Program-made: the position numbers and the translations under genes
The notes under the pieces: model-generated
Seen by the model: the letters and a program-made list of their open reading frames with translations, nothing else
What the model was told of the DNA's origin: nothing
Database searches by the model: none
Assembly (NCBI RefSeq): GCF_000150275.1
Contig: NW_002060948.1
Span: 953,983-1,017,982 of the forward strand
Length of the DNA stretch: 64,000 nt
Direction of reading: 5' to 3'
Source: Trichoplax adhaerens
Lineage: Eukaryota > Animalia > Placozoa
Shown: positions 12,902 through 40,020 of the stretch, piece after piece
How the letters are laid out: the number at the start of each line of letters is the position of its first letter
How positions within the stretch are numbered: the first letter of the stretch is position 1

Positions 12902-14450
12902 AAACTACCCTGAAAGTCTGTAACTGTCATACTCGTATGTACCTGTTCAACGACAGCAACAAATTTATTTAATTAATTCGAATTAGGTAAACCCACACAC
13001 AATGCTGTGAGAACAAGAGCCCTGATATAATATATTACAGCGAATTTTTTTATTGCTAATTCTCTTTAGCTCTGATTCTACAGTGTAGCTGCTATATGAA
13101 TAAATCCTCTTCTCTTTTATAGTATAATAAAGGATAATAAAGGGCGTTAGAAACGAAAGCTTTGTCGTACCATACCAACTTTCACAAATTTATCGTGAAT
13201 GAGTGCTCTAGATTTCTATTCTTAAACGGTTGCTGTATTCACGGTTGTGGCTCATAACAATTAACGGTATATTAAATTGTAAATACATAACCAAGTCATT
13301 GCAATAATTTACAGCTTAAGTCGCCATGCGGAAAGTTTTCTTGACTCTCTTATAGGTAATTACGATATTATTTACATGTTTGGCCAAGTGCCCCTTCACT
13401 TTTCTCTTTGAAAGTACTATAAGTATTTTACTTTTCGGACCTTCTTAAGTAGAACTGTGTACGCGTATCAAGAAATAGTAATGACGATTATCAGTAATAT
13501 TCAAAAGAAGTTACAAGATGGTTTTGAGAGTATATACGACAGGCAAAAAATTGAGATTTGGTGTTGACAATTGGTCATGCCGACATGGGTAAAAATCCTT
13601 TTCTCAATTACATATTAGGCCATGAAATGCTAAAGAGCGATTTCGGGATTATAGATATTATGGACCCTGCTATTATTCAGATCGGTCATGGAATAGAAAC
13701 TTTATTTGCTAAACCGATTGTAAGTAAGTACTATCCTTGGGTTTTTGCAGATTTATCAAGTTTTCCAGTATACACATCATATGAGAATTCTGTTGTGGCT
13801 GCTATTAGCACTAAATTGGCGGTTCGAAATACCCGTCAGGTTAAGGGTATTGTAATTTTAAAGGAAATCACTAGTTTATGCAGTGGGAAACTATACGAAT
13901 TACATATAGTTCCATAGATCACCCAATAGATGCAAGGGAAAACCGTTTTCCCCCGTTTAGGTTACTTAATTAGCGAAGTTAATCTGTTTACAATTGTTGC
14001 CGTAAACTAGTTAAAATGAGTAGATCTTGTGAGGTTGTATATTGTCATATACAATACAGTACGAGTATACATCGTGTATATATACACGTTGTCATAAATA
14101 ACACGCGTAATTAAATAAGATTTATTCATTATGTTTATATTCTAACGTGGCATGATCGAATTGTAATCATACCAGGAACTACCGTACACAAAAATGAGAA
14201 GTGCAATCCAATTGGTTAGTTTCCTGCTGTTGTTAATTGTATATTTGCATTCTATATTGTTATTCGATATGACAAACACGGAAGTTTGCTGAGCCGCACC
14301 TAAGTTTCAGAAATTTACTTTCTATTGCTATTTTGAATTACAATTTTAATCTAATACTGCATCATGATATAACATATTATTATTCCATACAGTTCCATCC
14401 CTATTTTGAATTACAATTTTAATCTAATACTGCATCATGACGTAACATAG
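12902..14450 (+). repeat. Inverted segmental duplication, arm 1 (partner 17698-19389)
   Basis: Reverse complement matches 17698-19389 almost base for base, e.g. aaactaccctgaaagtctgtaactgtcat vs atgacagttacagactttcagggtagttt. ORFs 13558+ and 18010- differ at only about 4 residues. Confidence 0.92.
13481..13917 (+). pseudogene. Decayed B-like GTPase paralog (N-terminal domain only)
   Basis: ATG at 13481 gives MTIISNIQKKLQDGFE, homologous to the B N-terminus, then a frameshift. The P-loop has decayed to GHADMGKNP and G3 to DLSS. YPWVF and LAVRN.RQVK are retained. Confidence 0.85.
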
Positions 14451-14480: not shown

Positions 14481-14544
14481 TTTTTAAAATCTTAGGTGAG
14501 ACTTAGTGAAAGGAATATTTCACCAAACGAAAGGAAAGATCGCA

Positions 14545-17076
14545 ATGATCCAGATTAGTATCAGTGAAATTCAAGCTAAATTAATAGAAGGCTATGGACT
14601 AATAAAAGATGCAAAGGGTAAAGATTTAGTACTGGTGATCGGTAATACCGGTGTGGGTAAAAGCACCTTTCTGAATTATATGCTAGGGTACAAAATGTAC
14701 CAAAATGAAGAATCTGATACGGTGGAGACGGTAGAGAGAGAGTGTCCCGCACATATTGGGCATAATATGCATTCACAAACTTTGTATACACATCCGATTA
14801 CAGATAAAAATTATCCTTGGGTTTTTACCGACTGTCCGGGATTTCTGGATAATAGAATGACCAATGATACGATTGTGACTTCCATTAGCATGGAATTAAC
14901 TATTCGCATTGCAAAACAAGTCAAGGGGATTGTTATACTGATGGATGCGACTGAGTTTTTAAGTAGTAGATTGACTGCTTTGGGTCCGTTGATGAAGATA
15001 TTGATTAAATTATTTCGAGATCCAGTTGAAATGTTAAAGTATTCTGTAATTGGTGTGACAAAACTAGATCAAATAAAGGGAGGAAAAACGAGGGCTAAGA
15101 AAATAACGTTACAAGGTTTGAATAAAATTAAAGAAGAATGTCGTAGAAGAATAAAAACTCTTGAGACAGAGAAGAGAGAAAGAGATGGAACAGATTTGAT
15201 TATCAGTGAATATAAAGTGATGGAAGAGTTTACTAGTGCAGTACTTGGTCGTAAAGATGATATCATGTTTATTGATATTCTTGATGATGGTGATTCAAAA
15301 CAGCTCGTAACCGATCGTATTTGTGCCATTAGATCGAGAACTGAAGCTCAAACTGATCAGTTACCACATGATACTTCTCCACCTCCAATATCAACATCTA
15401 CTAGTAATGCTCAACAAGATGCACTGCCGTTACCGCTAATTACGATCGCAGACTTCAATTTTGAAGATTATGATATCAATAGAACAAGCTTTAATAAAGC
15501 AATTTACGATTTGGCTGGTGAAGGTAATCAGCTAATCGGTGCAATTACAGGAGTTACAGATCAGCTTAAACGTGCGATTGATTTGTGGAATGATAACAAA
15601 AAGAGAATGACGTCGATGAAAAGATTGAGATCGGAGTTGGACAGTTATGTTTCTGCTTCTGAAGTCCCAACAAAATTAATAAACACTTGGTCAGAAATGC
15701 TTGAAGAAAATGAACAATCTATCCAGTCTGAAAAAAGAAAGATGCAGTCTGTTAATGACCAGTTAAAAAAATTTAAACAAGAATTGAATGAAATTAATAC
15801 TGATAAGCCCGTGATATTTGCTGAAAAGAAGTATATCAAAAAGGAGCAATATTGGACCTATCATGAAGTCCTTTTTGATTTTGATACTGAAGATGAACGG
15901 ACACCAATTGTTGATATCGATCAACGAATAGGTAGTGGTCGCTGGTGCAGTACAACAGATGAAAGGCGGAGAGGCCGATATAAAACGTGGTATCAATCTG
16001 GCTGGTGGAAAAGTGGGGATGCTACTATGACGGTTTATATTGCTTCTAAGCATGATACAGGTAATCGTAGACGTATTAAAGATCTTCGAGTAGAAATTAG
16101 TCGATGCAAAGAGTCTTTCGACGAGTTAAATGATAACGTGCTTGAGCTTAAGAAATCTAAGGAACGCATTTCATCCAATATAACATCCGTGAAAAATGTA
16201 GTCCAGGAAGAAGTAGAGAAAGATCGCACAAATAAACTACGGCAGTGTGATGGAGATATCGAGCAATTGTCTGCGCGGATGGCAGAAAATCGGAGACGTA
16301 TGGAAAAGAGTAAAGCAAAAGGTTTAGAATTACTGGAAAATTTTTACGGTGATTCTGATACTTTGAAAATGCCTGAAAAATTTGAGATTGTGCAAAGTAT
16401 CAACGAGTTGCTACGGTTTCCGAGCACTTTGGTATACAAATTTATTAAGCGCTATAAAACCTTTAAAGCGAACTTTGATGCAACTAGAAGATATTTTCAG
16501 TTAGACTTAAATGAAACGGATTTGAGTCAACTTTCTCAGGATAATACAGCAGATGAGTTAGACGATGGTGCTATTAACAAAAAAGATCCCATAACTGGTA
16601 AATGGATTAGGACACTGGTGGTAACGAAGGCAGGAACAGGATTTGAATTATCTTCATTAATGGAGCAATTTCCTATGAATAGCGTAGGCAGTGTGTTTGA
16701 GTTTACTCATCCAACGACTGGTAAAAAAGAGCGTATTCTTTACGGTGATTGGGCCCAACTGAATGAATCAGCTTCGCCTACATCCACTGAGGAAGAACAG
16801 ATTTCTCAAGTGGATCAAGTGCTTAGTATGTCATCGAATGATCCACAAGAACTCAACAGATTAAAACAAAGCGTAGAGGAAGAGATAGAAATGTTAACGA
16901 AAATTATTCAAGAGCGAGAAGAAGAACTTTTTACGAAGCAACGTCAGCTAGATAAAATCATTGAGCGCCTTAAAAGGTTTACAACAGATGAAACAACAGA
17001 AGATATTAGTTCTATGGAGGATAGTTTTGTCCAACTTGATATTACAGAGGTTTCTTCTGTTCCTACTGGTGTCTAA
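14545..17076 (+). CDS. Intronless GTPase / coiled-coil / U-box-like protein, subfamily A, copy A1
   Basis: Uninterrupted ORF; the first ATG (MIQISI) is at 14545 and aligns with the paralog starts. G1 GNTGVGKST, G2 SQT, G3 DCPG, G4 TKLD; heptad-rich segments; KDPITGKWIRTLVVTKAGTGFE; acidic tail SSMEDSFVQL. Confidence 0.9.
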   Translation: MIQISISEIQAKLIEGYGLIKDAKGKDLVLVIGNTGVGKSTFLNYMLGYKMYQNEESDTVETVERECPAHIGHNMHSQTLYTHPITDKNYPWVFTDCPGFLDNRMTNDTIVTSISMELTIRIAKQVKGIVILMDATEFLSSRLTALGPLMKILIKLFRDPVEMLKYSVIGVTKLDQIKGGKTRAKKITLQGLNKIKEECRRRIKTLETEKRERDGTDLIISEYKVMEEFTSAVLGRKDDIMFIDILDDGDSKQLVTDRICAIRSRTEAQTDQLPHDTSPPPISTSTSNAQQDALPLPLITIADFNFEDYDINRTSFNKAIYDLAGEGNQLIGAITGVTDQLKRAIDLWNDNKKRMTSMKRLRSELDSYVSASEVPTKLINTWSEMLEENEQSIQSEKRKMQSVNDQLKKFKQELNEINTDKPVIFAEKKYIKKEQYWTYHEVLFDFDTEDERTPIVDIDQRIGSGRWCSTTDERRRGRYKTWYQSGWWKSGDATMTVYIASKHDTGNRRRIKDLRVEISRCKESFDELNDNVLELKKSKERISSNITSVKNVVQEEVEKDRTNKLRQCDGDIEQLSARMAENRRRMEKSKAKGLELLENFYGDSDTLKMPEKFEIVQSINELLRFPSTLVYKFIKRYKTFKANFDATRRYFQLDLNETDLSQLSQDNTADELDDGAINKKDPITGKWIRTLVVTKAGTGFELSSLMEQFPMNSVGSVFEFTHPTTGKKERILYGDWAQLNESASPTSTEEEQISQVDQVLSMSSNDPQELNRLKQSVEEEIEMLTKIIQEREEELFTKQRQLDKIIERLKRFTTDETTEDISSMEDSFVQLDITEVSSVPTGV

Positions 17077-18009
17077 ACTCTCTGAATAGTAAATAATCTT
17101 AAGGATGAGAGTAAGTGCCGAACTTGTGTATTTCTAGATAAATTGGGAGTGAGTATCCCTAAATCATTGCTCTTGTTCAGAAAAGCTACACGTTGCAGTG
17201 GTCTATTATGTACTGTAAGTAAGAATACAGTAACCTGTTGTACTGCACCTAATGTGTCGTGATAAGATAAGGTAATGAATTACTAAGATAAAGGCATAAG
17301 ACGGTATTATAGCTATGCCATTTAAACGCAGTAAATCCTAAATAAAAAGTGATTTCTAGTAAGCCTACTAGGTGAAGTGTGTCAAAGTCCCTCGTGCAAA
17401 CGTTAACAGCTAAACGTGGAAACATAACGTGGTCTACAGGTTACGTATTTTTAGTAAGTCTATACTAATAGTATTGTATAATACAGTTTTATATGTAGCA
17501 TATTATCTTATGGTGCATTATGAATAGACTGCAAAAGAAATTGTTGGCGAATGCTACGAAGAATAGTGACTATACAGACAGCAGGAGCTATTAGTGCTTT
17601 GGAGTAATAAAGTTCCCTATTTCTATAATAAAAAGGGTGTTTGTATTTCCTGTGAGAACTCTTTTAGAGATCCTAGTATTATCATATGAAATAGTGAGCT
17701 ATGTTACGTCATGATACAGTATTAGATTAAAATTGTAATTCGAAATAGCGATAGAAAGTAAATTTCTGAAACTTAAGTGCGGCTCAGCAAACTTCCGTGT
17801 TTGTCATATCGAATAACAAGATAGAATGTAAATATACAATTAACAACAGCAGGAAACTAATGTATACTCGTACTGTACTGTATATACAACCTCACAAGAT
17901 CTACTCATTTTAACTAGTTTACGGCAACAATTGTAAACAGATTAACTTCGCTAATTAAGTGACCTAAACGGGGGAAAAAAACGGTTTTCCCTTGCATCTA
18001 TTGGGTGAT

Positions 18010-18446
18010 CTATGGAACTATATGTAATTCGTATAGTTTCCCACTGCATAAACTAGTGATTTCCATTAAAATTACAATACCCTTAACCTGACGGGTATTT
18101 CGAACCGCCAATTTAGTGCTAATAGCAGCCACAACAGAATTCTCATATGATGTGTATACTGGAAAACTTGATAAATCTGCAAAAACCCAAGGATAGTACT
18201 TACTTACAATCGGTTTAGCAAATAAAGTTTCTATTCCATGACCGATCTGAATAGTAGCAGGGCCCATAATATCTATAATCCCGAAATCGCTCTTTAGCAT
18301 TTCATGGCCTAACATGTAATTGAGAAAAGGATTTTTACCCATGTCGGCATGACCAATTGTCAACACCAAATCTTAATCTTTTGCCTGTCGTATATACTCT
18401 CAAAACCATCTTGTAACTTCTTTTGAATATTACTGATAATCGTCAT
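18010..18446 (-). pseudogene. Inverted copy of the decayed B-like GTPase relic
   Basis: Near-identical to 13481-13917, with the same frameshift and degenerate P-loop. Confidence 0.85.
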
Positions 18447-19122: not shown

Positions 19123-20770
19123 ACGACAAAGCTGACGTTTCTAACGCCCTTTATTATCCTTTATTATACTATAAAAGAGAAGAAGATTTATTCATATGGC
19201 AGCTATACTGTAGAATCAGGGCTGAAGAGAATTAGCAATAAAAAAATTCGCTGTAATATATTATATCAGGGCTCTTGTTCTCACAGCATTGTGTGTGGGT
19301 TTACCTAATTCGAATTAATTAAATAAATTTGTTGCTGTCGTTGAACAGGTACATACGAGCATGACAGTTACAGACTTTCAGGGTAGTTTAGGCATATAAG
19401 GCACAGAGTATTATTATGAATAGTTGAAAATAGGAAATTAGCCAAATCAGGTGAAAGTACGTAAAAATTGGAAAGATTTTACACTATGTTAAGCTTAAGT
19501 CAAGTCAATGTTGACTTAAAGAGGTAAATAACATATTTAAAAGTTTACAAATGAAATTATACCATCAAATTTTTTCTCACAAGATTTTTATTAGAAATTC
19601 AACTGTGAACAACTACGATAATTTAACAATAATCAAATAATGCTGTAGTCGCACATAGATTAATATTATAAGGCTGATAAATGATACCAATTATAAATAG
19701 GAAATAATGCGAGAATAACTACTACGTTAAATAAGTAATACACTGGTAGAATATCTTCCAGAAATTGATAAGGTTAATAAATAGGTTGCTTACCGAAAAT
19801 ACGCGTATCTAATAAGCATCTCCTTTTTATACGCACAATACTAGATCAATAATGATACCGACCGCCTAATGCTATCAGAGCTGATATCGAATTCATTGTA
19901 GCGGTATAACTATGATATGATATGGTTTACAGTAGCCATTGTGGGTTAATTGTTAGAGGTGCAGTAACTCCTTTTAGAAAGTAAAAGTGAAGTCGATGTT
20001 GTAGCTTATTTTGTAGTAATCACTTACCTTTTAGTTAAAATTATGTACTTATCATTTAATAGGATTCTAGCATTATTTGCCATTAAAACCTTATAATGAG
20101 TTCGACTGAAATTTACTCTATTGTGGACCAGTGGGGGCTAATATACCTATCTATTCGTATAAATTACTTGCACTAAGGAAAAGAATATGAATAGTGGGTA
20201 CTTATATAAAAAATTCTACTATCCCTATTATAACCTCTTTTTTCAGATATCATTAGTAATAAAAATCGACTAAATTTTAACAGAATTTGAGTACCGTAAT
20301 GAACTAGTGTTATTATGACAATAATTGTTCATTATAATTGGGAACCAACGGCAACAAAGTTTTGTATCGATATGTTATAGTACTGGCAGCCAAATTGACA
20401 ATATTTAAATGTTAACATCAATGACCCGTATCTTAAGAATTTATTACCATCGTTATTATCTTTGCCCTAATCTTCATCTTTACATCAAATATCCGTAACA
20501 ATTTACTAATTTAAGAACCGTAATGAATTACTAAAATTATTAATATCTACTAGTAAACCTGCCGTTTAAATGTAGTATACAGTACTATTGCAAATTACCC
20601 TGCGAATGATATGCTGTATATGGCTATTATCATATGGATTACTAGATGTTAATTGAGTCATTTTTTACTTATTTCTCGAAAAATTAAACAACAAATTCGA
20701 CATTTCCTGAATGCCAAGCAAGTCTATCAAATAGTAGAAAAATACCTCTAAGAATTAATATATGCTTATT

Positions 20771-21149
20771 NNNNNNNNNNNNNNNNNNNNNNNNNNNNNN
20801 NNNNNNNNNNNNNNNNNNNNNNNNNNNNNNNNNNNNNNNNNNNNNNNNNNNNNNNNNNNNNNNNNNNNNNNNNNNNNNNNNNNNNNNNNNNNNNNNNNNN
20901 NNNNNNNNNNNNNNNNNNNNNNNNNNNNNNNNNNNNNNNNNNNNNNNNNNNNNNNNNNNNNNNNNNNNNNNNNNNNNNNNNNNNNNNNNNNNNNNNNNNN
21001 NNNNNNNNNNNNNNNNNNNNNNNNNNNNNNNNNNNNNNNNNNNNNNNNNNNNNNNNNNNNNNNNNNNNNNNNNNNNNNNNNNNNNNNNNNNNNNNNNNNN
21101 NNNNNNNNNNNNNNNNNNNNNNNNNNNNNNNNNNNNNNNNNNNNNNNNN
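20771..21149. other. Assembly gap
   Basis: Run of N. Confidence 1.
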
Positions 21150-23099
21150 ACGGATCGTAGCATTTTATAAAAACCTGTACTAAAGGAGAGGGAAAGTCTA
21201 ATAACTCAGCGACTTCTTTAATAACTTGAAATTTCACAGGTACTCTAGCGTTATCAGGACTACCTTCGAAGAACGATTTTAACAATTGTGTACCTTTACT
21301 TTTACTTTCTTTTATTAAATTTTGATTTTCTTTAATTCTATTAGAAAGTCGATTAATTTCTTGATCACACTCTGTAATCTTCATTTCCTGATCTTTCGCC
21401 GCCTTAAGTTTCCCATCTCGTATAGATTTAACACTCTGAATCAAGATTTGGTTCGCTTCTTTAAGCTCATTTAAGCTTGCCCGTAATTCTGTTTCTTGAT
21501 TCTGCAGAGATTCTATCTCCTTGTTAATCTCTTTAATCCGTAGTTGATTACCTGTATCTTGCTTGGTTTTAATATAAGCATCTACTTTAGCATAAGCTTC
21601 AGTGAACCATTGAGAAGCATATATTGTTTTATAATAGCCCTTTTTACGTTGATCGACGGTATCGTACCAATCCCCATTTGCTTGATCTTTTTCAATAACC
21701 ATTGGAATCGATTCACTATCAGTTTTAGCCTCAAAGTTTAGTTTATTAAACCAACCTCTCCAAAAAGACCAGTCTTTAGATAGCTGCTCTGAACGAAATA
21801 GTTTAAGTTCATCCGTGTCGATTTTGGCTAACTCTCTATCTAAGGTAACTATACGTGTCTTAATAGTCCGCTTCTCTTCTGATTGCGAATTAATTGTAGT
21901 CCTATTTCGAGCGATGAGTGTCTCTGAGTTTTCTATAGAGCCAGTTGAATCTCCAGAATCATAAAATAAGCGTTGAAGATTTGATTTAAGTTCATTTAGT
22001 GTCATAATTCTAGTCTCACTTTCTTGGCAAGTGTTAATAGCACTCTTAAGTTGATTTGATTGTGTCTTGATAGCTTCTATTAGTTCGTTACCATCATGTG
22101 CGCGATCATAAATAGCCTTATTAAAAAGTATTCTTTGCTCACTGTATGTTTGAAAGTTAAAATCCTTCACAGTAAGACGTTTAACTTTCTCTTGCTTATC
22201 TTTATCATGATCAGAGCTCAAGGGTCCGAAAGACGAGGGAAAAGAACGCACAGCAGAGACTATTTGATTATACAATTTTTTCGATTTATGTGGCCTAATT
22301 CCTTTAATCAGTTCGATAACTCTTTCTCTGGACTGGCCTTCATCTAAGGGTTTAACAAATACTATATCATCTTGCTTTTGAAGTATAGCAGCAACAAAAG
22401 CCTTAATAAATGCAAAATCTTCCGGTGTCGGGGCAGATGCTGAATGTAAATCATCAGCTAAAGGAGATTTACTTCTTTCATACCTATTTTTAAGTATTTC
22501 TAGATTTCCATCACAATTCTTTTCGATTTTTTTAAAGCTTGCAAAATTCTTTGCTTTGTAGTCTCTTCTGTCAGTCCTAGAGAATCTACTTTTGTTATAG
22601 CCACGATGGAATAATTCGCCATATCCATTGGGCTCTTAAAGAGCGAAATTAGTGTCTTCACTAATTGACTTAACTCATTTAGTCTTGCAGAGAGTAAAGT
22701 ATGGACTTCTATTAAAATCACAACAGCCTTAACCTGACGAGCATTTCGAACCGCCAATTCAGTACTAATAGAACTTACGACAGCATCACTTGATATTCTA
22801 TTATCTTGAAATCCGGGACAATCTGTATAAACCCAAGGATAGATCTCGCTGACAAATGGCGTAGCGTATAAAGTTTCTGACTCCATTTCATGGCCGATCT
22901 TAAAGGTGGCAGGCTGCACCGTATCTATATTTCCAGTATTTTGGTCCTGACACATTTTATGCTCTAGCATGTAGTTCAGAAAAGTACTTTTGCCAACGCC
23001 AGTATTACCAATAGCTAACACTAAATCTTTACCTTCGCCCTTCCGAGTATGTTCAAAACCATTTTCTAACTTCTTTAGAATCTCGTTGATGCTCGTCAT
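21150..23099 (-). pseudogene. Copy B2 of the subfamily-B GTPase, with a 1-nt frameshift and its 3' end in the gap
   Basis: ORFs 22500-23099 and 20755-22275 are near-identical to 29646-32168. Near 22535, caagctttaaaaaaatcg replaces caaggttttaaaaaaatcg (-1 nt). This sits beside a homopolymer, so it could be a sequencing error. Confidence 0.75.
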
Positions 23100-24350: not shown

Positions 24351-24670
24351 ACGCTTACGATTACCTGTATCATGCTTAGAAGCAATGTAAACCGTCATAA
24401 TTAGCATAGTAGCGTAATACTATCCTAGTCACTATTCTTCGTGGCATTCGCCAACAATTTCTTTTGCAGTCTATTCATAATGCACCATAAGATAATATGC
24501 TACATATGCAACTGTATTATACAATACTATTAGTATAGATAGTATTGCGCTACATCAGGTAACGTCAGAACATAGCGGTACGATTAGAAGTACGTATCAT
24601 GTATTATCAATAGAATCTTAGGTGAGACTTAGTGAAAGGAATATTTCACCAAACGAAAGGAAAGATCGCA

Positions 24671-26408
24671 ATGATCCAGATTAGTATCAGTGAAATTCAA
24701 GCTAAATTAATAGAAGGCTATGGACTAATAAAAGATGCAAAGGGTAAAGATTTAGTACTGGTGATCGGTAATACCGGTGTGGGTAAAAGCACCTTTCTGA
24801 ATTATATGCTAGGGTACAAAATGTACCAAAATGAAGAATCTGATACGGTGGAGACGGTAGAGAGAGAGTGTCCCGCACATATTGGGCATAATATGCATTC
24901 ACAAACTTTGTATACACATCCGATTGCGGATAAAAATTATCCTTGGGTTTTTACCGACTGTCCGGGATTTCTGGATAATAGAATGACCAATGATACGATT
25001 GTGACTTCCATTAGCATGGAATTAACTATTCGCATTGCAAAACAAGTCAAGGGGATTGTTATACTGATGGATGCGACTGAGTTTTTAAGCAGTAGATTGA
25101 CTGCTTTGGGTCCGTTGATGAAGATATTGATTAAATTATTTCGAGATCCAATTAAAATGTTAAAGTATTCTGTAATTGGTGTGACAAAACTAGATCAAAT
25201 AAAGGGAGGAAAAACGAGGGCTAAGAAAATAACGTTACAAGGTTTGAATAAAATTAAAGAAGAATGTCGTAGAAGAATAAAAACTCTTGAGACAGAGAAG
25301 AGAGAAAGAGATGGAACAGATTTGATTATCAGTGAATATAAAGTGATGGAAGAGTTTACTAGTGCAGTACTTGGTCGTAAAGATGATATCATGTTTATTG
25401 ATATTCTTGATGATGGTGATTCAAAACAGCTCGTAACCGATCGTATTTGTGCCATTAGATCGAGAACTGAAGCTCAAACTGATCAGTTACCATATGATAC
25501 TTCTCCACCTCCAATATCAACATCTACTAGTAATGCTCAACAAGATGCACTGCCGTTACCGCTAATTACGATCGCAGACTTCAATTTTGAAGATTATGAT
25601 ATCAATAGAACAAGCTTTAATAAGGCAATTTACGATTTGGCTGGTGAAGGTAATCAGCTAATCGGTGCAATTACAGGAGCTGTAGATCAGCTTAAACGTG
25701 CGATTGATTTGTGGAATGATAACAAAAAGAGAATGACGTCGATGAAAAGATTGAGATCGGAGTTGGACAGTTATATTTCTGCTTCTGAAGTCCCAACAAA
25801 ATTAATAAACACTTGGTCAGAAATGCTTGAAGAAAATGAACAATCTATCCAGTCTGAAAAAAGAAAGATGCAGTCTGTTAATGATCATTTAAAAAAATTT
25901 AAACAAGAATTGAATGAAATTAATACTGATAAGCCCGTGATATTTGCTGAAAAGAAGTATATCAAAAAGGAGCAATATTGGACCTATCATGAAGTCCTTT
26001 TTGATTTTGATACTGAAGATGAACGGACACCAATTGTTGATATCGATCAACGAATAGGTAATGGTTGCTGGTGCAATACAACAGATGAAAGGCGGAGAGG
26101 CCGATATAAAACGTGGTATCAATCTGACTGGTGGAAAAGGGGATGCTACTATGACGGTTTACATTGCTTCTAAGCATGATACAGGTAATCGTAGGCGTAT
26201 TCAAGATCTTCGAGAAGAAATTAGTCGATGCAAAGAGTCTTTCGACGAGTTAAATGATAACGTGCTTGAGCTTAAGAAATCTAAGGAACGCATTTCATCC
26301 AATATAACATCCGTGAAAAATGTAGTCCAGGAAGAAGTAGAGAAAGATCGCACAAATAAACTACGGCAGTGTGATGGAGATATTGACCAATTGTCTGCGC
26401 GGATGGCA
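24671..26408 (+). pseudogene. Copy A2 of the subfamily-A GTPase, with a 2-nt frameshift and its 3' end in the gap
   Basis: Near-identical to A1. At about 26139, tggaaaaggggatgct replaces tggaaaagtggggatgct; homology continues in another frame (ORF 26061) up to the gap. Confidence 0.78.
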
Positions 26409-27345
26409 NNNNNNNNNNNNNNNNNNNNNNNNNNNNNNNNNNNNNNNNNNNNNNNNNNNNNNNNNNNNNNNNNNNNNNNNNNNNNNNNNNNNNNNNNNNN
26501 NNNNNNNNNNNNNNNNNNNNNNNNNNNNNNNNNNNNNNNNNNNNNNNNNNNNNNNNNNNNNNNNNNNNNNNNNNNNNNNNNNNNNNNNNNNNNNNNNNNN
26601 NNNNNNNNNNNNNNNNNNNNNNNNNNNNNNNNNNNNNNNNNNNNNNNNNNNNNNNNNNNNNNNNNNNNNNNNNNNNNNNNNNNNNNNNNNNNNNNNNNNN
26701 NNNNNNNNNNNNNNNNNNNNNNNNNNNNNNNNNNNNNNNNNNNNNNNNNNNNNNNNNNNNNNNNNNNNNNNNNNNNNNNNNNNNNNNNNNNNNNNNNNNN
26801 NNNNNNNNNNNNNNNNNNNNNNNNNNNNNNNNNNNNNNNNNNNNNNNNNNNNNNNNNNNNNNNNNNNNNNNNNNNNNNNNNNNNNNNNNNNNNNNNNNNN
26901 NNNNNNNNNNNNNNNNNNNNNNNNNNNNNNNNNNNNNNNNNNNNNNNNNNNNNNNNNNNNNNNNNNNNNNNNNNNNNNNNNNNNNNNNNNNNNNNNNNNN
27001 NNNNNNNNNNNNNNNNNNNNNNNNNNNNNNNNNNNNNNNNNNNNNNNNNNNNNNNNNNNNNNNNNNNNNNNNNNNNNNNNNNNNNNNNNNNNNNNNNNNN
27101 NNNNNNNNNNNNNNNNNNNNNNNNNNNNNNNNNNNNNNNNNNNNNNNNNNNNNNNNNNNNNNNNNNNNNNNNNNNNNNNNNNNNNNNNNNNNNNNNNNNN
27201 NNNNNNNNNNNNNNNNNNNNNNNNNNNNNNNNNNNNNNNNNNNNNNNNNNNNNNNNNNNNNNNNNNNNNNNNNNNNNNNNNNNNNNNNNNNNNNNNNNNN
27301 NNNNNNNNNNNNNNNNNNNNNNNNNNNNNNNNNNNNNNNNNNNNN
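26409..27345. other. Assembly gap
   Basis: Run of N. Confidence 1.
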
Positions 27346-27538: not shown

Positions 27539-28236
27539 ATGTTGAATGTCACTTATATCCAGGAGAAGGTAGAGAAAGGCTTTGAGCAAACACGCCAAAC
27601 GAAAAAATAAATAAAAGAGACTTTCAGTAAGCTTACTAGGAGGAGTGTATCAAAGTTCCTCGTGCTAACGTTAACGACTAAGAGTGGAAACACAACGATC
27701 GGCACGACCGGCGTTGGGAAAAGTACACTCTTAAATTATATGTTACACAATGAAATGAAATGAAAAATGAAGATAACGGGGCTGTAGATGCCATAGATTC
27801 TGCAACCTTTAAGGTCGGTCATGAAATGGATTCAGAAACTTCATATGCGAAGCCAGTTATAAGCAATCACTATCCTTGGGTTTTCACAGATTGTCCAGGT
27901 TTTTTGGATAATAGAGATCCAGACGATGCTGTTGTGACTGCAATTAGTAGTCCCCTGGCGGTTCGAAATGCCCGTCAGGTTAAAGCTGTCGTAATATTAA
28001 TAGAAATTAGTGGTATACTCCGTGCGGGACTAGAGGAATTAAGCACATTGCTGAAAGTACTGATTACACTTTTTCACAACCCAGTCGATATGGTAAACTA
28101 TTCCGTCTTTGGTATAACAAAAACAGATCTTTTGGGATTGACAGAAGACAGAGCGAAACAAAAAGTTTGGGATGCTTTTAAGAAAATCGTAAAGCATTGT
28201 GATCAAAAACTGGATACGATCAAGAAGGAGCCATAA
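27539..28236 (+). pseudogene. Disrupted B-like GTPase paralog
   Basis: MLNVTYIQEKVEKGFEQTR, then an insertion, then IGTTGVGKSTLLNYML, a frameshift, and ORF 27760 with DCPGFLDNR and TKTD. Truncated after the G domain. Confidence 0.85.
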
Positions 28237-29645: not shown

Positions 29646-32168
29646 ATGACGAGCATCAACGAGATTCTAAAGAAGTTAGAAAATGGTTTTGAACATACTC
29701 GGAAGGGCGAAGGTAAAGATTTAGTGTTAGCTATTGGTAATACTGGCGTTGGCAAAAGTACTTTTCTGAACTACATGCTAAAGCATAAAATGTGTCAGGA
29801 CCAAAATACTGGAAATATAGATACGGTGCAGCCTGCCACCTTTAAGATCGGCCATGAAATGGAGTCAGAAACTTTATACGCTACGCCATTTGTCAGCGAG
29901 ATCTATCCTTGGGTTTATACAGATTGTCCCGGATTTCAAGATAATAGAATATCAAGTGATGCTGTCGTAAGTTCTATTAGTACTGAATTGGCGGTTCGAA
30001 ATGCTCGTCAGGTTAAGGCTGTTGTGATTTTAATAGAAGTCCATACTTTACTCTCTGCAAGACTAAATGAGTTAAGTCAATTAATGAAGACACTAATTTC
30101 GCTCTTTAAGAGCCCAATCGATATGGCCAATTATTCCATCGTGGCTATAACAAAAGTAGATTCTCTAGGACTGACAGAAGAGACTACAAAGCAAAGAATG
30201 TTGCAAGGTTTTAAAAAAATCGAAAGGAATTGTGATGGAAATCTAGAAATGCTTAAAAATAAGTATGAAAGAAGTAAATCTCCTTTAGCTGATGATTTAC
30301 ATTCAGCATCTGCCCCGACACCGGAAGATTTTGCATTTATTAAGGCTTTTGTTGCTGCTATACTTCAAAAGCAAGATGATATAGTATTTGTTAAACCCTT
30401 AGATGAAGGCCAGTCCAGAGAAAGAGTTATCGAACTGATTAAAGGAATTAGGCCACATAAATCGAAAAAATTGTATAATCAAATAGTCTCTGCTGTGCGT
30501 TCTTTTCCCTCGTCTTTCGGACCCTTGAGCTCTGATCATGATAAAGATAAGCAAGAGAAAGTTAAACGTCTTACTGTGAAGGATTTTAACTTTCAAACAT
30601 ACAGTGAGCAAAGAATACTTTTTAATAAGGCTATTTATGATCGCGCACATGATGGTAACGAACTAATAGAAGCTATCAAGACACAATCAAATCAACTTAA
30701 GAGTGCTATTAACACTTGCCAAGAAAGTGAGACTAGAATTATGACACTAAATGAACTTAAATCAAATCTTCAACGCTTATTTTATGATTCTGGAGATTCA
30801 ACTGGCTCTATAGAAAACTCAGAGACACTCATCGCTCGAAATAGGACTACAATTAATTCGCAATCAGAAGAGAAGCGGACTATTAAGACACGTATAGTTA
30901 CCTTAGATAGAGAGTTAGCCAAAATCGACACGGATGAACTTAAACTATTTCGTTCTGAGCATCTATCTAAAGACTGGTCTTTTTGGAGAGGTTGGTTTTA
31001 TATATTAGACTTTGAGGCTAAAACTGATAGTGAATCGATTCCAATGGTTATTGAAAAAGATCAAGCAAATGGGGGTTGGTACGATACCGTCGATCAACGT
31101 AAAAAAGGCTATTATAAAACAAAATATGTTTCTCAATGGTTCACTGAAGCTTATGCTAAAGTAGATGCTTATATTAAAACCAAGCAAGATACAGGTAATC
31201 AACTACGGATTAAAGAGATTAGCAAGGAGATAGAATCTCTGCAAAATCGAAAAACAGAATTACGGGCAAGCTTAAATGAGCTTAAAGAAGCGAACAAAAT
31301 CTTGATTCAGAATATTGAATCTATACGAGATGGGAAACTTAAGGCGGCGAAAGATCAGGAAATGAAGATTACAGAGTGTGATCAAGAAATTAATCGACTT
31401 TCTAATAGAATTAAAGAAAATCAAAATTTAATAAAAGAAAGTAAAAGTAAAGGTACACAATTGTTAAAATCGTTCTTCGAAGGTAGTCCTGATAACGCTA
31501 GAGTACCTGTGAAATTTCAAGTTATTAAAGAAGTCGCTGAGTTATTAGACTTTCCCTCTCCTTTAGTACAGGTTTTTATAAAATGCTACGATCCGTTTAT
31601 AAAACAGCAGCTATCTGATATTCGTAAACTTTTTGAGATTAATCCTGCTACGATTAATTTTAGCACATTACCTACTCAAGCGGTCCCTGAATGTGATGAG
31701 GACATTGGTCCTAAAGATCCTATAACGAGTCAACGAATTATAACTCCGGTAGTAACTGATGCTGGCACCCTATTTGATTTACAATCATTGCGTAAATGCT
31801 TTCCTGAACATCCTACTAAAGAAGATGTATATGAATTCTCCCACTATGACGGACGAGTAGAGCATATTCACTATTTATGCTGGAAACAAATCGGTAATCT
31901 TAGTGAATATTTGTATCAGAGAAGAAGACAGACATCTCCAGAAAAACGTCACTCATTTATTAACATACCGAGTGATTTAAATGAGTTACTCAGAATACAA
32001 TACGATCTTCAGCAAGAAATAGCTTGTATAGAAAAGGAATTTAAGGCGGCGATGGATAAAAAGCAAATAGAATTAGAGAAGATTAATACACAGATTCAAT
32101 CGCTTCATATATCAGAATCATCGGATAAAGATACTTTCAGTGATGAAGAATATGAGATTGTATCTTAA
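29646..32168 (+). CDS. Intronless GTPase / coiled-coil / U-box-like protein, subfamily B, copy B1 (840 aa)
   Basis: G1 GNTGVGKST, SET, DCPG, TKVD; Trp-rich insert DWSFWRGWF...GGWYD...YVSQWF; PKDPITSQRIITPVVTDAGTLFDLQSL; tail SDEEYEIVS*. Confidence 0.92.
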   Translation: MTSINEILKKLENGFEHTRKGEGKDLVLAIGNTGVGKSTFLNYMLKHKMCQDQNTGNIDTVQPATFKIGHEMESETLYATPFVSEIYPWVYTDCPGFQDNRISSDAVVSSISTELAVRNARQVKAVVILIEVHTLLSARLNELSQLMKTLISLFKSPIDMANYSIVAITKVDSLGLTEETTKQRMLQGFKKIERNCDGNLEMLKNKYERSKSPLADDLHSASAPTPEDFAFIKAFVAAILQKQDDIVFVKPLDEGQSRERVIELIKGIRPHKSKKLYNQIVSAVRSFPSSFGPLSSDHDKDKQEKVKRLTVKDFNFQTYSEQRILFNKAIYDRAHDGNELIEAIKTQSNQLKSAINTCQESETRIMTLNELKSNLQRLFYDSGDSTGSIENSETLIARNRTTINSQSEEKRTIKTRIVTLDRELAKIDTDELKLFRSEHLSKDWSFWRGWFYILDFEAKTDSESIPMVIEKDQANGGWYDTVDQRKKGYYKTKYVSQWFTEAYAKVDAYIKTKQDTGNQLRIKEISKEIESLQNRKTELRASLNELKEANKILIQNIESIRDGKLKAAKDQEMKITECDQEINRLSNRIKENQNLIKESKSKGTQLLKSFFEGSPDNARVPVKFQVIKEVAELLDFPSPLVQVFIKCYDPFIKQQLSDIRKLFEINPATINFSTLPTQAVPECDEDIGPKDPITSQRIITPVVTDAGTLFDLQSLRKCFPEHPTKEDVYEFSHYDGRVEHIHYLCWKQIGNLSEYLYQRRRQTSPEKRHSFINIPSDLNELLRIQYDLQQEIACIEKEFKAAMDKKQIELEKINTQIQSLHISESSDKDTFSDEEYEIVS

Positions 32169-34651: not shown

Positions 34652-37231
34652 ATGCCTGCGATAGAAATCAGTGAGATACAAGCCAAATTGGCAGCTGGTT
34701 TTAAACTAACACAACAAGCCAATGGCAAAGACTTAGTTCTGGTGATCGGTAATACTGGTGTGGGTAAAAGCACCTTTCTTAACTATATGTTGGGGCATAC
34801 AATGCGTGAAAATGAAGAATTAGATGTGATAGAGGCCGTAGAGACGTCTGCCTTACACATTGGCCATGAGATGCGTTCAGAGACTTTATACGCACGGCCG
34901 GTTGTGAGTCAAGACTATCCTTGGGTTTTTACCGACTGTCCGGGATTTTTGGATAACAGAATAACCAATGATACAATTGTGACTTCTATTAGTATGGAAT
35001 TAGCGATTCGTAGTGCAAATCAGGTCAAAGGAATTATTATCTTGATGGATGCAACTGAGTTTTTGAATAGTAGATTGAGTACTTTAAGTCCATTGATGAA
35101 GATATTGATTAAATTGTTTAGAGATCCAGTTGAAATGTTAAAGTATTCTGTAATTGGTGTGACCAAAACGGATAAGATGAAAGGTGGAAAAACAAAATCT
35201 AAAAGAATGATGGTGCAAGCTTTTGGTAAAATCAAAGAAGAATGTCAGAGAAAAATACAGACTCTTCAGTCAGAATTTGAAAGACAAGGTCATAAAGCTT
35301 TCTTTTCTATAGGGAGTGAGAATAAAGAGGAAAGCGATCTGAGAGAATTAACTGTTAGCGACTATAAAGTGATGACAGAATATATCAGTGCAGTACTTAG
35401 ACGACAAGATGAGATCGTTTTTATTGATGTTCTTGATGACGGCGATTCAAAGCAACACATTATTGATCGTATTCATGCAATTAGGCCGAGAACTGAAGCT
35501 CAAACGGGCCACTCACTACAGGATACTCTTCCAACTGCGTTATCAGCATCCGCTGAATACTTGCAGCTAGATACTTTATCGCTACGGCCTATTACAGTAG
35601 CAGATTTTAATTTTGAGCATTATGATGTAAATAGAAGACACTTTAATCTTGCTATTTATGATTTTGCTAGTGAAGGTAGCCGATTAATTGGTGCGATCAT
35701 AGGGGTAGCAAATCAACTGAAACGCATGATCGATATGTGGCAAGACAACAAAATTAGAATGGCGGCATTGAATAAACTAAAATCAGAGTTACAAAATTAT
35801 ATCTCTGTTTCTGAAGGCCCAAGGAAATTATTGAATACCTGGTCAGAAATGCTTTCAGAAAATGCTCAATCCATTCAATCAGCGCAAGAAGATATTCATT
35901 CGATTAAAAATCAGATAAAAAAGCATGAACAAGAATTGAATGAAGTTAATACTGATAAACCCATAAAATTTGCGGAAAAAATATATCTCAAAAAAGAGTG
36001 GTATTGGACCCACCATAAGGAACTCTTCAAGTTTGATACTGAAAATGAATCAGTACCAATAGTCGATGTAGACAAACACATAGGTAATGGTTGCTGGTGT
36101 TATACGAAAGATGAAAGAAAAAAAGGCCGATATAAATCGTTATATCTATCAGACTGGCTGGCGTACGGGGATGCTAGAATAACTGTTTACATTGCTTCTA
36201 AGGATGAAGAAGGCAACCGTAAGCTCGTTAGAGATCTTCAGACAGAAATTCATCGATCTGGAGAACTCTTGGCTGAGATACAAGCTAATCTATCGTTGCT
36301 TGAAGAATCTAAAGATCGTTTATTATCCAGTATAAAATCGATGGAAAATGTAGTTCAGGAAGAAGTAGAAAAGGATCGAGCTGATAAAATGTTGCAATGT
36401 GATGGAGAAATTGAGCAGTTATCTGCTCGTATGACAGAAAATCGAAAGCAGATAAAAATGACTAAAGCAAAGGCTTTAAAATTATTGAAAAAATTTTGTG
36501 ATGATTCTGAATCTTTAAATATCCATAAAAAATTTAAAATTGTCAAAAGTATTAATGAGTTACTACAACTACCAGGCACTTTAGTGGATAAATTCATTGA
36601 ACGTTATGAGGGGTTTAAAGCTGAGTTTAAAACCATACAAAAATGTTTTCGGATAGACTTAGATAAGGAAGATTTGAGCCAATTTTCGCAAGATAATTCA
36701 ACGGATCAATTAGATAGAGCTATAAATAGAAAAGATCCAATAAGTGGTAAATGGATTAGGACGCTGGTAGTAACAAAAGCAGGAACAGGATTTGAATTAT
36801 CTTCCTTAGTGGAGCAATTTCCTGAGAATTGTATAGGGAGCGTTTTTGAATTTATTCATCCTACTGGTAAAAAAGAGCGCATTTTTTATGGTGATTGGAC
36901 TATCATGTCTGAATGGCCCGCACTTACAGGGCAAGAAGAGAGATTTTCTCAAGCCGATCAAGTACTTGGTATGTCATCGAATGATCCACTGGAATTGATC
37001 AAAGTGAAAAAGAGTGTAGAGGAAGAGATAGAGTTGTTAGTGCAAGGTATTCAAGAGCAAGAAGAGGAACTCTTTGCAAAGCGAGATCAGTTAAAAAAAA
37101 TCACCGAACGTCTTAAAGGGCTTGGCTTTTTACTTTCAGTAGATGAAACCGAAGAGACTAGTTCCATTGATAGTAGTTTTATCCAAATAGATGCTATAGA
37201 TACTTCCTTTATTCCTGATGTTAGCGCATAA
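34652..37231 (+). CDS. Intronless GTPase / coiled-coil / U-box-like protein, subfamily A, divergent copy A3 (859 aa)
   Basis: Collinear with A1: GNTGVGKST, DCPG, TKTD; KDPISGKWIRTLVVTKAGTGFE; tail IDSSFIQID. Confidence 0.92.
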   Translation: MPAIEISEIQAKLAAGFKLTQQANGKDLVLVIGNTGVGKSTFLNYMLGHTMRENEELDVIEAVETSALHIGHEMRSETLYARPVVSQDYPWVFTDCPGFLDNRITNDTIVTSISMELAIRSANQVKGIIILMDATEFLNSRLSTLSPLMKILIKLFRDPVEMLKYSVIGVTKTDKMKGGKTKSKRMMVQAFGKIKEECQRKIQTLQSEFERQGHKAFFSIGSENKEESDLRELTVSDYKVMTEYISAVLRRQDEIVFIDVLDDGDSKQHIIDRIHAIRPRTEAQTGHSLQDTLPTALSASAEYLQLDTLSLRPITVADFNFEHYDVNRRHFNLAIYDFASEGSRLIGAIIGVANQLKRMIDMWQDNKIRMAALNKLKSELQNYISVSEGPRKLLNTWSEMLSENAQSIQSAQEDIHSIKNQIKKHEQELNEVNTDKPIKFAEKIYLKKEWYWTHHKELFKFDTENESVPIVDVDKHIGNGCWCYTKDERKKGRYKSLYLSDWLAYGDARITVYIASKDEEGNRKLVRDLQTEIHRSGELLAEIQANLSLLEESKDRLLSSIKSMENVVQEEVEKDRADKMLQCDGEIEQLSARMTENRKQIKMTKAKALKLLKKFCDDSESLNIHKKFKIVKSINELLQLPGTLVDKFIERYEGFKAEFKTIQKCFRIDLDKEDLSQFSQDNSTDQLDRAINRKDPISGKWIRTLVVTKAGTGFELSSLVEQFPENCIGSVFEFIHPTGKKERIFYGDWTIMSEWPALTGQEERFSQADQVLGMSSNDPLELIKVKKSVEEEIELLVQGIQEQEEELFAKRDQLKKITERLKGLGFLLSVDETEETSSIDSSFIQIDAIDTSFIPDVSA

Positions 37232-38031: not shown

Positions 38032-40020
38032 TTGGTTATAGGTAATACGGGCGTTGGTAAAGGCACTTTCGTCAATTATATGCTTAGGCATGAAATGTTC
38101 AGAGATGCAGAATCTGCAGCTGTAGATACCTATGGTCCTGCTACCTTTACGATCGGTTATGAAATGCGGCCAGAAATCTTATATGCGAAGCCATTTCTAA
38201 GCGAGAAATATCCCTTGGTTTTCAAAGATTTCCCCAGATTTCAAGATAATAGATTATCAAGCGATGCAGTTGTGACTTCTATTAGCACTGAATTGGCGGT
38301 TCGAAATGCTCATCAGGTTAAAAGTAATTTTAATGGAAATCAATAGTTTGCTCGGTACGAGACTACCTGACTTAAATCAAATGGCGAAGACACTGATTAC
38401 GCTTCAAGAGGCCAGTCGATATGAGAATGAGTAACTACTGTAATCTTTATATGGGTATTAGTTGCTTTCTAGTCGATTTCTTCAATAATTCATGCTTTAT
38501 CATAAGAATCTATGTAGCCTACATCTTGCATTCTCGATCAGATCAACAGAAGAGAAGACTAATTTCTTACCCTATTGCAATACTTTAAATACAGTACGGT
38601 GCTCGTACTACGAGCATATTGCAAATTCTTAATTTCTCATGTGTCTGCAACGTCAATGAAAATACACATACTATATGACGAATTATAATTATTAAATCAT
38701 AGTATGAATGTTTGGCCATTTCAGTCAGTCCACATAGAGACTAAGCAATTTGTTTTAACTGGCAGCAATCAATGCCTGTTGTCGCACGATACCAACCACA
38801 AAGATTTACTTCTTGTACTTGACTATTGAATGTGATCAAGCAGTGAATTAATTTCCTACTTGCTGATCACATTACTATCCTATTGTGGAAAAACGCGAAT
38901 CCGGAAGCTCATTGACCTAAATTTTAATCTTTAAACTGAAAAAAAACGCGAAGTCCGGAAATGATTAAAGATTTTAACTTTCAAGCTTATTGCGAGCAGA
39001 GAATATCATTTAATATAGCTATTTATAACTATGCGCATAATGGCAATGTACTAATAGGAGATTAAAGAGCAGTCTAAGCAACTAAAAAATGCTATTAAAA
39101 CATATCAGGAGAGTAAGAATCGGTCCGAGGCACCAAAAACTTTGAAATCAGACCTTGAGAATCACCTTTCTGGTTCAGAAGATTCAACTAATTCAATAAA
39201 AACATCGGAAGAAATCCCAACTCAAAATAATCAATTAAAGAACATGAGGTAAAGCTATTGAGAAGGAAAAAACTAAATTACGTAGAGAAGTAACTGGTAT
39301 TGATACAGATGACCTCATGCTATTTCGTTCAGCTTCTCTTTCTAAAAATTGGACTTTATGGCATAGTTGTTTTTTACGATAGAGTTTAAGGCTGATACCA
39401 ACGCTAAGTGGATATCAGTCAGTGTACATACTGAGGAGAAAATGGACAGTGGCACAATACAGTAGATTGATCGAAAGGTTATTATAAAACAAAATTCCGT
39501 TCTAAATGGTATGTTAAAGCTTATGCGAAAATGGAAGCTTATATCAAAACCAGACACGATGCAGGTAATCAACTTCGGATCCAAAAGATTATCATGAAGA
39601 TAAAATCACTTAAGAGTAAAAAAAAATAAATTAGAAACAAGTTTAGAAAAGCTTAAAAAGGAAAACAAAGTCCTAAATCAAAATACGTATTCAATCTTTA
39701 CATGATGGAAATCTTAATGCAGAAAATAATCGAGAAGATTGCGAAATGTGATCAAGAAATTAAACAGCTTTCTGGTAGAATTGAATCAAGCCGAAGTTTG
39801 ATTGAAAAGAATAAGTAGGTACACGACTATTGGATTCACTTTTTTTAAAGTGTTCCCGATAAGGCCACAGTACCGTAGAAATTCCGGCTTATGAGAGAAA
39901 TTGCGGAGTTGTTAGACTTTCCATCCCATTTTAATACAAGTCTTCGTGAAGCCAGATAATCATTTTATAAAAGATCAGCTTCCTTTTCTTCGCTAGCTTT
40001 TTGAGATAAATCCTGATAAG
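38032..40020 (+). pseudogene. Heavily decayed near-full-length B-like paralog
   Basis: G-domain fragment at 38032-38420 (IGNTGVGKGT, FQDNR.SSDAVV). Frameshifted remnants at 38960-40020: KDFNFQAYCEQRISFN, IDTD, KCDQEIKQLSGRIE, AELLDFPS, FEINP. Confidence 0.85.

Follow-up and report, generated by a model that had tools for sequence, protein, structure and literature searches.

Candidate LIR-type motifs in the C-terminal tails of a placozoan family of GTPase/U-box-like proteins

TRIM-type E3 ligases can act as autophagy receptors or regulators; in them a coiled coil and an LC3-interacting region (LIR; also Atg8-interacting motif, AIM) are combined with a domain of E3 type. The verified LIR of optineurin is DSFVEI (residues 176-181), within SSGSSEDSFVEI; that of FUNDC1 is DSYEVL, and ATG4B has a near-terminal one, FEIL, at 388-391 (PMC5119064, PMC7297954). 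GIMAP6 binds GABARAPL2 and reaches autophagosomes via its C-terminal 10 residues (PMC3804274). On the bacterial side, endosymbiont effectors with GIMAP-type and U-box domains have been described, as has the transfer of endosymbiont toxin domains into Trichoplax (PMC3482391). The locus analysed here is a stretch of 64,000 nucleotides of the Trichoplax adhaerens genome (contig NW_002060948.1, positions 953,983 to 1,017,982, forward strand), referred to below as the window, in which three long intronless open reading frames (ORFs), A1, B1 and A3, were recognised from the ORF list and its translations. They encode related proteins with a GIMAP/AIG1-like G domain, and the C-terminal tail of each contains a motif that may be a lineage-specific LIR.

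Tail motifs and their likeness to known LIRs

A1 (14545-17076, + strand) encodes 843 residues from its ATG, in a frame that is open from a GTG at 14506; A3 (34652-37231, +; 859 residues) is 63% identical to it, and B1 (29646-32168, +; 840 residues) shows about 35% identity to the A genes and has the same architecture. The original prediction was that all three proteins end, at the same position, in an acidic motif of LIR/AIM consensus. ORF translation and a six-frame scan reproduced exactly the tails and coordinates on which it was based, and found no further tails of this kind in the window. The candidate LIR of A1 is SSMEDSFVQLD (17008-17040, +), with DSFVQL as its hexamer (17020-17037) and FVQL as its core (17026-17037); that of A3 is SSFIQI (37172-37189, +; core FIQI, 37178-37189), and that of B1 is EEYEIV (32145-32162, +; core YEIV, 32151-32162). 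All three cores have the form [W/F/Y]-x-x-[L/I/V] and are flanked by acidic residues or Ser, as had been proposed; the residue directly N-terminal to the aromatic is Ser in A1 (DSF) and A3 (SSF) and Glu in B1. The C-termini read ...SSMEDSFVQLDITEVSSVPTGV in A1, ...SSIDSSFIQIDAIDTSFIPDVSA in A3 and ...SDEEYEIVS in B1. To say that the proteins end in the motif is thus apt for B1, in which one residue stands between core and stop, but loose for A1 and A3, in which 12 and 13 residues do.

The setting of the motifs is that of flexible tails. The acidic, Ser-rich tail of A1 (residues 815-843; 16987-17073, +) is predicted by AlphaFold2 (AF2) to be disordered, as coil with predicted local distance difference test values (pLDDT) below 50 that begins straight after a helix spanning residues 767-814; in B1, pLDDT is below 50 over residues 824-840, and a helix at 778-830 gives way to coil for the last 10 residues. 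Disorder of the A3 tail is assumed through alignment. In A1 the tail motif is the sole acid-flanked core motif of the protein, and in the others it is the sole one or one of two. A PDZ-type C-terminus, suggested by the TGV with which A1 ends, was discarded, A3 and B1 having no such ending.

Both DSFVQL of A1 and EEYEIV of B1 fit the canonical LIR pattern; EEYEIV in addition fits xLIR, the pattern used by iLIR, which was built from 27 motifs (PMC5119064). Internal candidates were set aside: ESFDEL of A1 sits in a modelled helix, SVFEFI of A3 corresponds by alignment to a strand that the A1 model places in the U-box-like domain, and EDFAFI of B1 fails both the canonical and the xLIR pattern. The xLIR matches that A1 and A3 have outside their tails all fall within modelled helix or strand.

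The bodies of the proteins bear on which known systems they resemble. A1 consists, from N- to C-terminus, of a GIMAP/AIG1-like G domain, a helical stalk, a beta domain, a coiled coil, what is predicted to be a degenerate U-box, a further coiled coil and the acidic tail; AF2 models of A1 and B1 (input alignment of 33 sequences; mean pLDDT 80.4 and 80.8, respectively) give the same order, as G domain, long helical stalk, beta-sheet domain, second long coiled coil, small alpha/beta domain, final long helix and tail of pLDDT below 50. The N-terminal G domain is the sole domain that Pfam recognises in A1, A3 and B1, at 29 bits against MMR_HSR1 (cut-off 21.9); its AIG1 score, 16.3 bits, is below the cut-off of 27, which some relatives pass (P0032, for example, at 28.8). 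The best Foldseek matches of the G domain are GIMAP7, GIMAP2 and Toc34, each with probability 1.0, and EngB. A U-box was not detected by Pfam in any of the three proteins; their small alpha/beta domain aligns with the Pfam U-boxes of five distant family members (P0010, P0037, P0039, P0041, P0044), and the family profile, compared with solved structures, matches the U-box of Legionella LubX (E = 2.5e-14) and then PUB12, UFD2 and CHIP. On these alignments we predict that the small domain is U-box-like. One family member, P0036, carries an OTU deubiquitinase domain C-terminal to its GTPase/U-box-like body, which fits a role of the family in the ubiquitin system.

Of the likenesses to known LIRs, that of A1 to optineurin, already pointed out in the original prediction, is borne out: SSMEDSFVQL has the Ser run, the Glu-Asp-Ser and the F-type core, with four of the six hexamer positions identical and a Ser before the Phe. 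The A1 motif adjoins a coiled coil, and A1 would share with optineurin an oligomeric, ubiquitin-system-linked character (PMC5119064, PMC7297954). It differs in having Gln for Glu at the second core position (the second x) and Leu for Ile, in lacking a UBAN domain, and in carrying in its C-terminal tail a motif that is internal in optineurin; binding by A1 is putative. EEYEIV of B1 resembles the LIRs of FUNDC1 and ATG4B: it combines a Y-type core and an acidic flank with Glu at the first core position, and is adjacent to the C-terminus as in ATG4B, although these proteins are unrelated to B1; in FUNDC1, binding is blocked once the Tyr is phosphorylated. GIMAP6 resembles the Trichoplax proteins in its GIMAP/AIG1-type G domain followed by a helical extension, and it needs its extreme C-terminus, but its last 10 residues are unlike an AIM, and the Trichoplax proteins, which are three times longer, include a stalk, a beta domain and a U-box-like domain. 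The combination of a predicted E3-type domain, a coiled coil and a candidate LIR would by analogy recall TRIM proteins, whereas the domains and their order differ, a GTPase standing in place of B-box and SPRY, and homology is limited to the RING/U-box fold.

Chance rate and conservation of the motifs

How often such motifs arise by chance was estimated from composition-preserving shuffles of the last 25-30 residues of each tail. The canonical pattern appeared in 0.017-0.018 of A1 shuffles and 0.024-0.027 of B1 shuffles, a joint rate of about 5e-4, whereas a looser definition, core plus acidic or Ser flank, was satisfied by 0.09-0.15 of shuffles per tail. In 163 non-placozoan representatives of the family the canonical pattern occurs 27 times overall (142,888 residues) and lies within the last 25 residues in three; the comparison of these 3/163 with the two of two independent Trichoplax tails gives a Fisher p of 7e-4, for a motif class picked post hoc. 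The motifs are above the chance rate for this class. One of the three is P0064 (L064:2275-4380), a distant family member whose contig looks bacterial; its tail, ending ...KEEWVQLNSNSL, shows a canonical LIR pattern of W type with VQL as in A1.

Purifying selection acts on the family, which is old within its lineage: the ratio of non-synonymous to synonymous rates (dN/dS) for A1 against A3 is 0.27, at a dS of 0.86, and the comparison of A with B has reached saturation. The last 32 codons of A1 and A3 are the least constrained and fastest-evolving part of the gene, with 25 non-synonymous and 4 synonymous differences. Within the A tail, similarity peaks at DSFVQLD/SSFIQID (sliding BLOSUM62 window on the A1/A3 alignment), and the changes around the motif are all conservative: M/I, E/D, D/S, V/I and L/I. 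The H2 orthologs (Trichoplax sp. H2) of A3 and B1 retain the motif, at less than 1% difference from those of H1 (T. adhaerens). The statement that the A and B tails otherwise differ was correct, since outside the motif they cannot be aligned (local A-versus-B scores of 21-25). A and B being one clade with otherwise unalignable tails, the motif has either been kept through saturating divergence or been gained twice. MAFFT places SSDKDTF of B1 under SSMEDSF of A, with YEIV of B1 then five residues downstream, which suggests a shared S-S-x-x-D-[S/T]-F block.

An A2 copy that has lost the core

In the A2 copy (24632-26408, +; 97% identical to A1) the reading frame shifts at codon 503/504, and an assembly gap of 937 N (26409-27345) then cuts the copy off. 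Scaffold C1311 and H2 show its 3' end, with a tail that reads SSMEDSFEIWC. When the junction on C1311 (L006) and at H2 L032:12400-12560 was compared with window positions 17020-17100, DNA homology to A1 was seen to end directly past the motif Phe codon, beyond which the sequence reads on, in a different frame, into the P-loop region of the G-domain fragment that comes next; this break and fusion indicate a deletion that removed the xxL part of the motif. The deletion allele is common to H1 (C1311) and H2. In H2 the A2-type gene is an intact ORF of 831 amino acids (TrispH2_003248) that has no canonical core; its dN/dS against A1 is 0.62, with few changes, and this value together with the H1 frameshift is compatible with relaxed constraint after loss of the motif, while being far from proof of it.

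We consider the best single explanation of the tail motifs to be that they are lineage-specific short linear motifs of LIR/AIM type, a reading that is plausible and unproven and that we hold tentatively. It rests on pattern, on context and on two independent instances. The Trichoplax genome has about four ATG8-family loci, single exons of which, read one by one with no joined gene model, translate as clearly GABARAP-like and LC3-like. The motif, displayed on a flexible tail just past the last coiled coil and preceded by Asp, Glu, Ser or Thr, would dock into both hydrophobic pockets of such a GABARAP- or LC3-type protein, and the acidic flank would strengthen the docking. Ser and Thr residues upstream in the tails fit an S/T-x-x-D/E spacing, which suggests sites of CK2 type and not of TBK1; phosphorylation of this cluster would probably strengthen the docking further. 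Docking would tie an oligomeric GTPase/E3-like protein to autophagic membranes, as adaptor, regulator or cargo.

Several observations weigh against this reading. The consensus claimed for all three tails holds for A1 and B1, but SSFIQI of A3 is outside the canonical pattern, having Ser at position 1, and A1 and A3 both fail xLIR, at position 5 (Gln) only, although Gln at the second core position is known in reported LIRs (CRY1 YGQL and YQQL; PMC7297954). The motif of A1 and A3, paralogs by descent, counts as one event, which leaves two independent instances, the A and the B lineage; the case that was made from three proteins keeps the above-chance rarity of the motif but not its threefold repetition, and the LIR class was itself chosen after the tails had been seen. 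Conservation among paralogs is likewise divided: the A1/A3 similarity peak and the H2 orthologs speak for it, whereas the A2-type copy, intact in H2, has done without the core. None of 20 full-length non-placozoan relatives has a canonical motif in its last 60 residues, which rules out the motif as a family-wide feature, and no orthologs outside Trichoplax H1 and H2 were found by word searches with A1 and with the C-terminal region of B1 or by a full profile search. The lack of the core in the A2-type copy and the failure to find distant orthologs weaken the LIR reading in particular. Placozoa have been reported to be without TBK1 orthologs (PMC6321704), so the analogy with optineurin, whose LIR is activated by TBK1 phosphorylation of the Ser before the Phe, cannot be literal. 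Finally, GIMAP6 does not need its N-terminal AIM look-alike, EEEYEQI, in order to bind GABARAPL2 (PMC3804274), so an acidic Y-x-x-I may lack function on a protein of GIMAP type.

The last point also serves the view that the motifs merely follow from composition: tails rich in Ser and acidic residues, with one or two hydrophobic ones among them, would occasionally yield the pattern with no binding function. We think this rather unlikely, though it has much that agrees with it: the frequency of the loosely defined motif in shuffled tails, a dN/dS of about 2 in the A tail, the intactness of the A2-type copy in H2 despite its loss of the motif, the common descent of A1 and A3 and the failure of A3 in both patterns, and the freedom of the original prediction to match any of many short-motif classes. 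It accords less well with the rarity of the full canonical pattern (1.7-2.7% of shuffles per tail, and far below that for A1 and B1 jointly), with its presence in so few of the relatives' tails, or with a conservation peak in the A tail that coincides with the motif and in which every substitution preserves it.

That non-randomness, and the disorder of the tails, would also fit a functional acidic-hydrophobic motif that docks onto some protein other than ATG8, such as the FIP200 claw, or one that is a SUMO-type or other beta-augmentation site. LIR and LIR-like motifs are inseparable on sequence grounds, and the FIP200 claw takes LIR-like phospho-acidic motifs; moreover, the protein bears a domain of the ubiquitin system, the predicted U-box. 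We nevertheless regard a non-ATG8 partner as improbable: the data nominate none, and an aromatic first position with Gln in the third would fit the usual SUMO-interaction patterns poorly. Less probable still is that the conserved element is not the core at all but the phospho-acceptor block upstream, S-S-x-x-[D/S]-[S/T]-F, with a role in how the protein is regulated or turned over. Every copy type has the block (SSMEDSF in A1 and A2, SSIDSSF in A3, SSDKDTF in B1), the Phe of B1 is aligned by MAFFT to that of A, the A2 type has retained it after losing the rest, and the CK2-like S/T-x-x-D/E sites cluster there; but alignment of such low-complexity tails is weak, as the local A-versus-B scores show, a non-coding frame of the window contains one chance occurrence of the pattern, and a role for the block is in any case compatible with an LIR at the core.

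The gene cluster, its bacterial relatives and what ATG8 binding would mean

The window sits on a 5.98-Mb scaffold and is very sparse in ORFs by bacterial standards. Protein records of the cluster exist for T. adhaerens (TRIADDRAFT_57164 and others) and for Trichoplax sp. H2 (TrispH2_003248, _003250 and _003251), and the H2 cluster is flanked by the intron-bearing animal genes Yip1 and DRC7. From these neighbours, records and ORF density it follows that the genes are nuclear and placozoan; a bacterial origin of the window DNA is ruled out by the first two. A literature search by identifier found no paper that mentions the gene identifiers of the cluster.

The cluster itself is less securely assembled in H1. 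The B2 copy (20755-23099, - strand) is interrupted by an N gap (20771-21149) and its tail is missing from the window; C1311 (14,955 bp) carries near-identical A, B and fragment copies in an order that differs from that of the window, its B copy having the B1 ending, SDEEYEIVS. The N gaps in B2 and A2 and the reordering on C1311 make the H1 assembly uncertain. In H2 the assembled cluster is simpler and lacks A1 and B2: the order is A2-type, fragment, B1 and A3, with no copy annotated as A1-type. Short family fragments or ORFs that consist of the G domain only lie at 13558-13917 (+), 18010-18369 (-), 27760-28236 (+), 38032-38346 (+) and 39438-39932 (+), with 32-48% identity to A1 and stops in some; in H2 the fragment downstream of A2 is annotated as a gene of 219 amino acids (L032 13289-13948).

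A profile search of the whole library put the family at 324 representatives with E <= 1e-30. The nearest full-length relatives, P0004, P0005 and P0008, are 29-33% identical, and their contigs, which are of plasmid or mobile-element type and belong to bacteria of intracellular kind, carry genes for relaxase (TraI/MobA), ParA, toxin-antitoxin (PIN/Phd), integrase and resolvase. Named genomes with full-length matches are those of Legionella and of Francisellaceae metagenome-assembled genomes (MAGs), and matches limited to the G domain come from Amoebophilaceae, Chlamydiae and Marinamargulisbacteria MAGs. A quick maximum-likelihood tree unites A and B in a single placozoan clade (SH-aLRT 100) that stands beside these bacterial sequences, its sister relationship being weakly supported. 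The Trichoplax genes resemble bacterial effectors (Amoebophilus-type repertoires, Legionella LubX) in where their nearest relatives occur and in the match of the family profile to the LubX U-box, but they are nuclear, form a clade of their own, have a predicted U-box that Pfam does not recognise and, compared with the 20 full-length relatives, are alone in having an LIR-like tail.

Each of the closest bacterial homologs is followed by a gene of 981-1314 amino acids (L020:12573-16508, L029:3393-7337, L030:9771-12716), annotated as ankyrin-repeat plus patatin in L029 and L030 and with no Pfam record in L020; homolog and downstream ankyrin-patatin gene may form a conserved two-gene effector module. 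Weak, partial G-domain relatives were also seen in a Candidatus Marinamargulisbacteria MAG (L051) and a Rickettsiaceae MAG (P0024). Both groups are related to the two known symbionts of Trichoplax, a margulisbacterium and a rickettsialean (PMC6784892); these matches are too weak and partial for a donor to be named. Transfer from a bacterium to a placozoan is the simplest reading, its direction not being proven. A bolder scenario, to which we give little credence, is that an effector-type GIMAP/U-box gene of intracellular bacteria entered the nuclear genome of a placozoan, multiplied while under purifying selection and gained phospho-regulated C-terminal LIRs, and that this former weapon would now act as an autophagy adaptor, in xenophagy or symbiont control, against the animal's own bacteria.

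As it stands, LIR-type function of the tails is a reasonable motif prediction that is cheap to test rather than a discovery. Were ATG8 binding true, it would link to autophagy an uncharacterised, placozoan-specific family of GTPase/E3-like proteins, in an animal that permanently harbours intracellular bacteria and in a family whose nearest relatives are bacterial and which was probably acquired horizontally. It would also provide, in an early-branching animal, a parallel to the interaction of GIMAP6 with GABARAPL2 and to the adaptor themes of TRIM proteins and optineurin.

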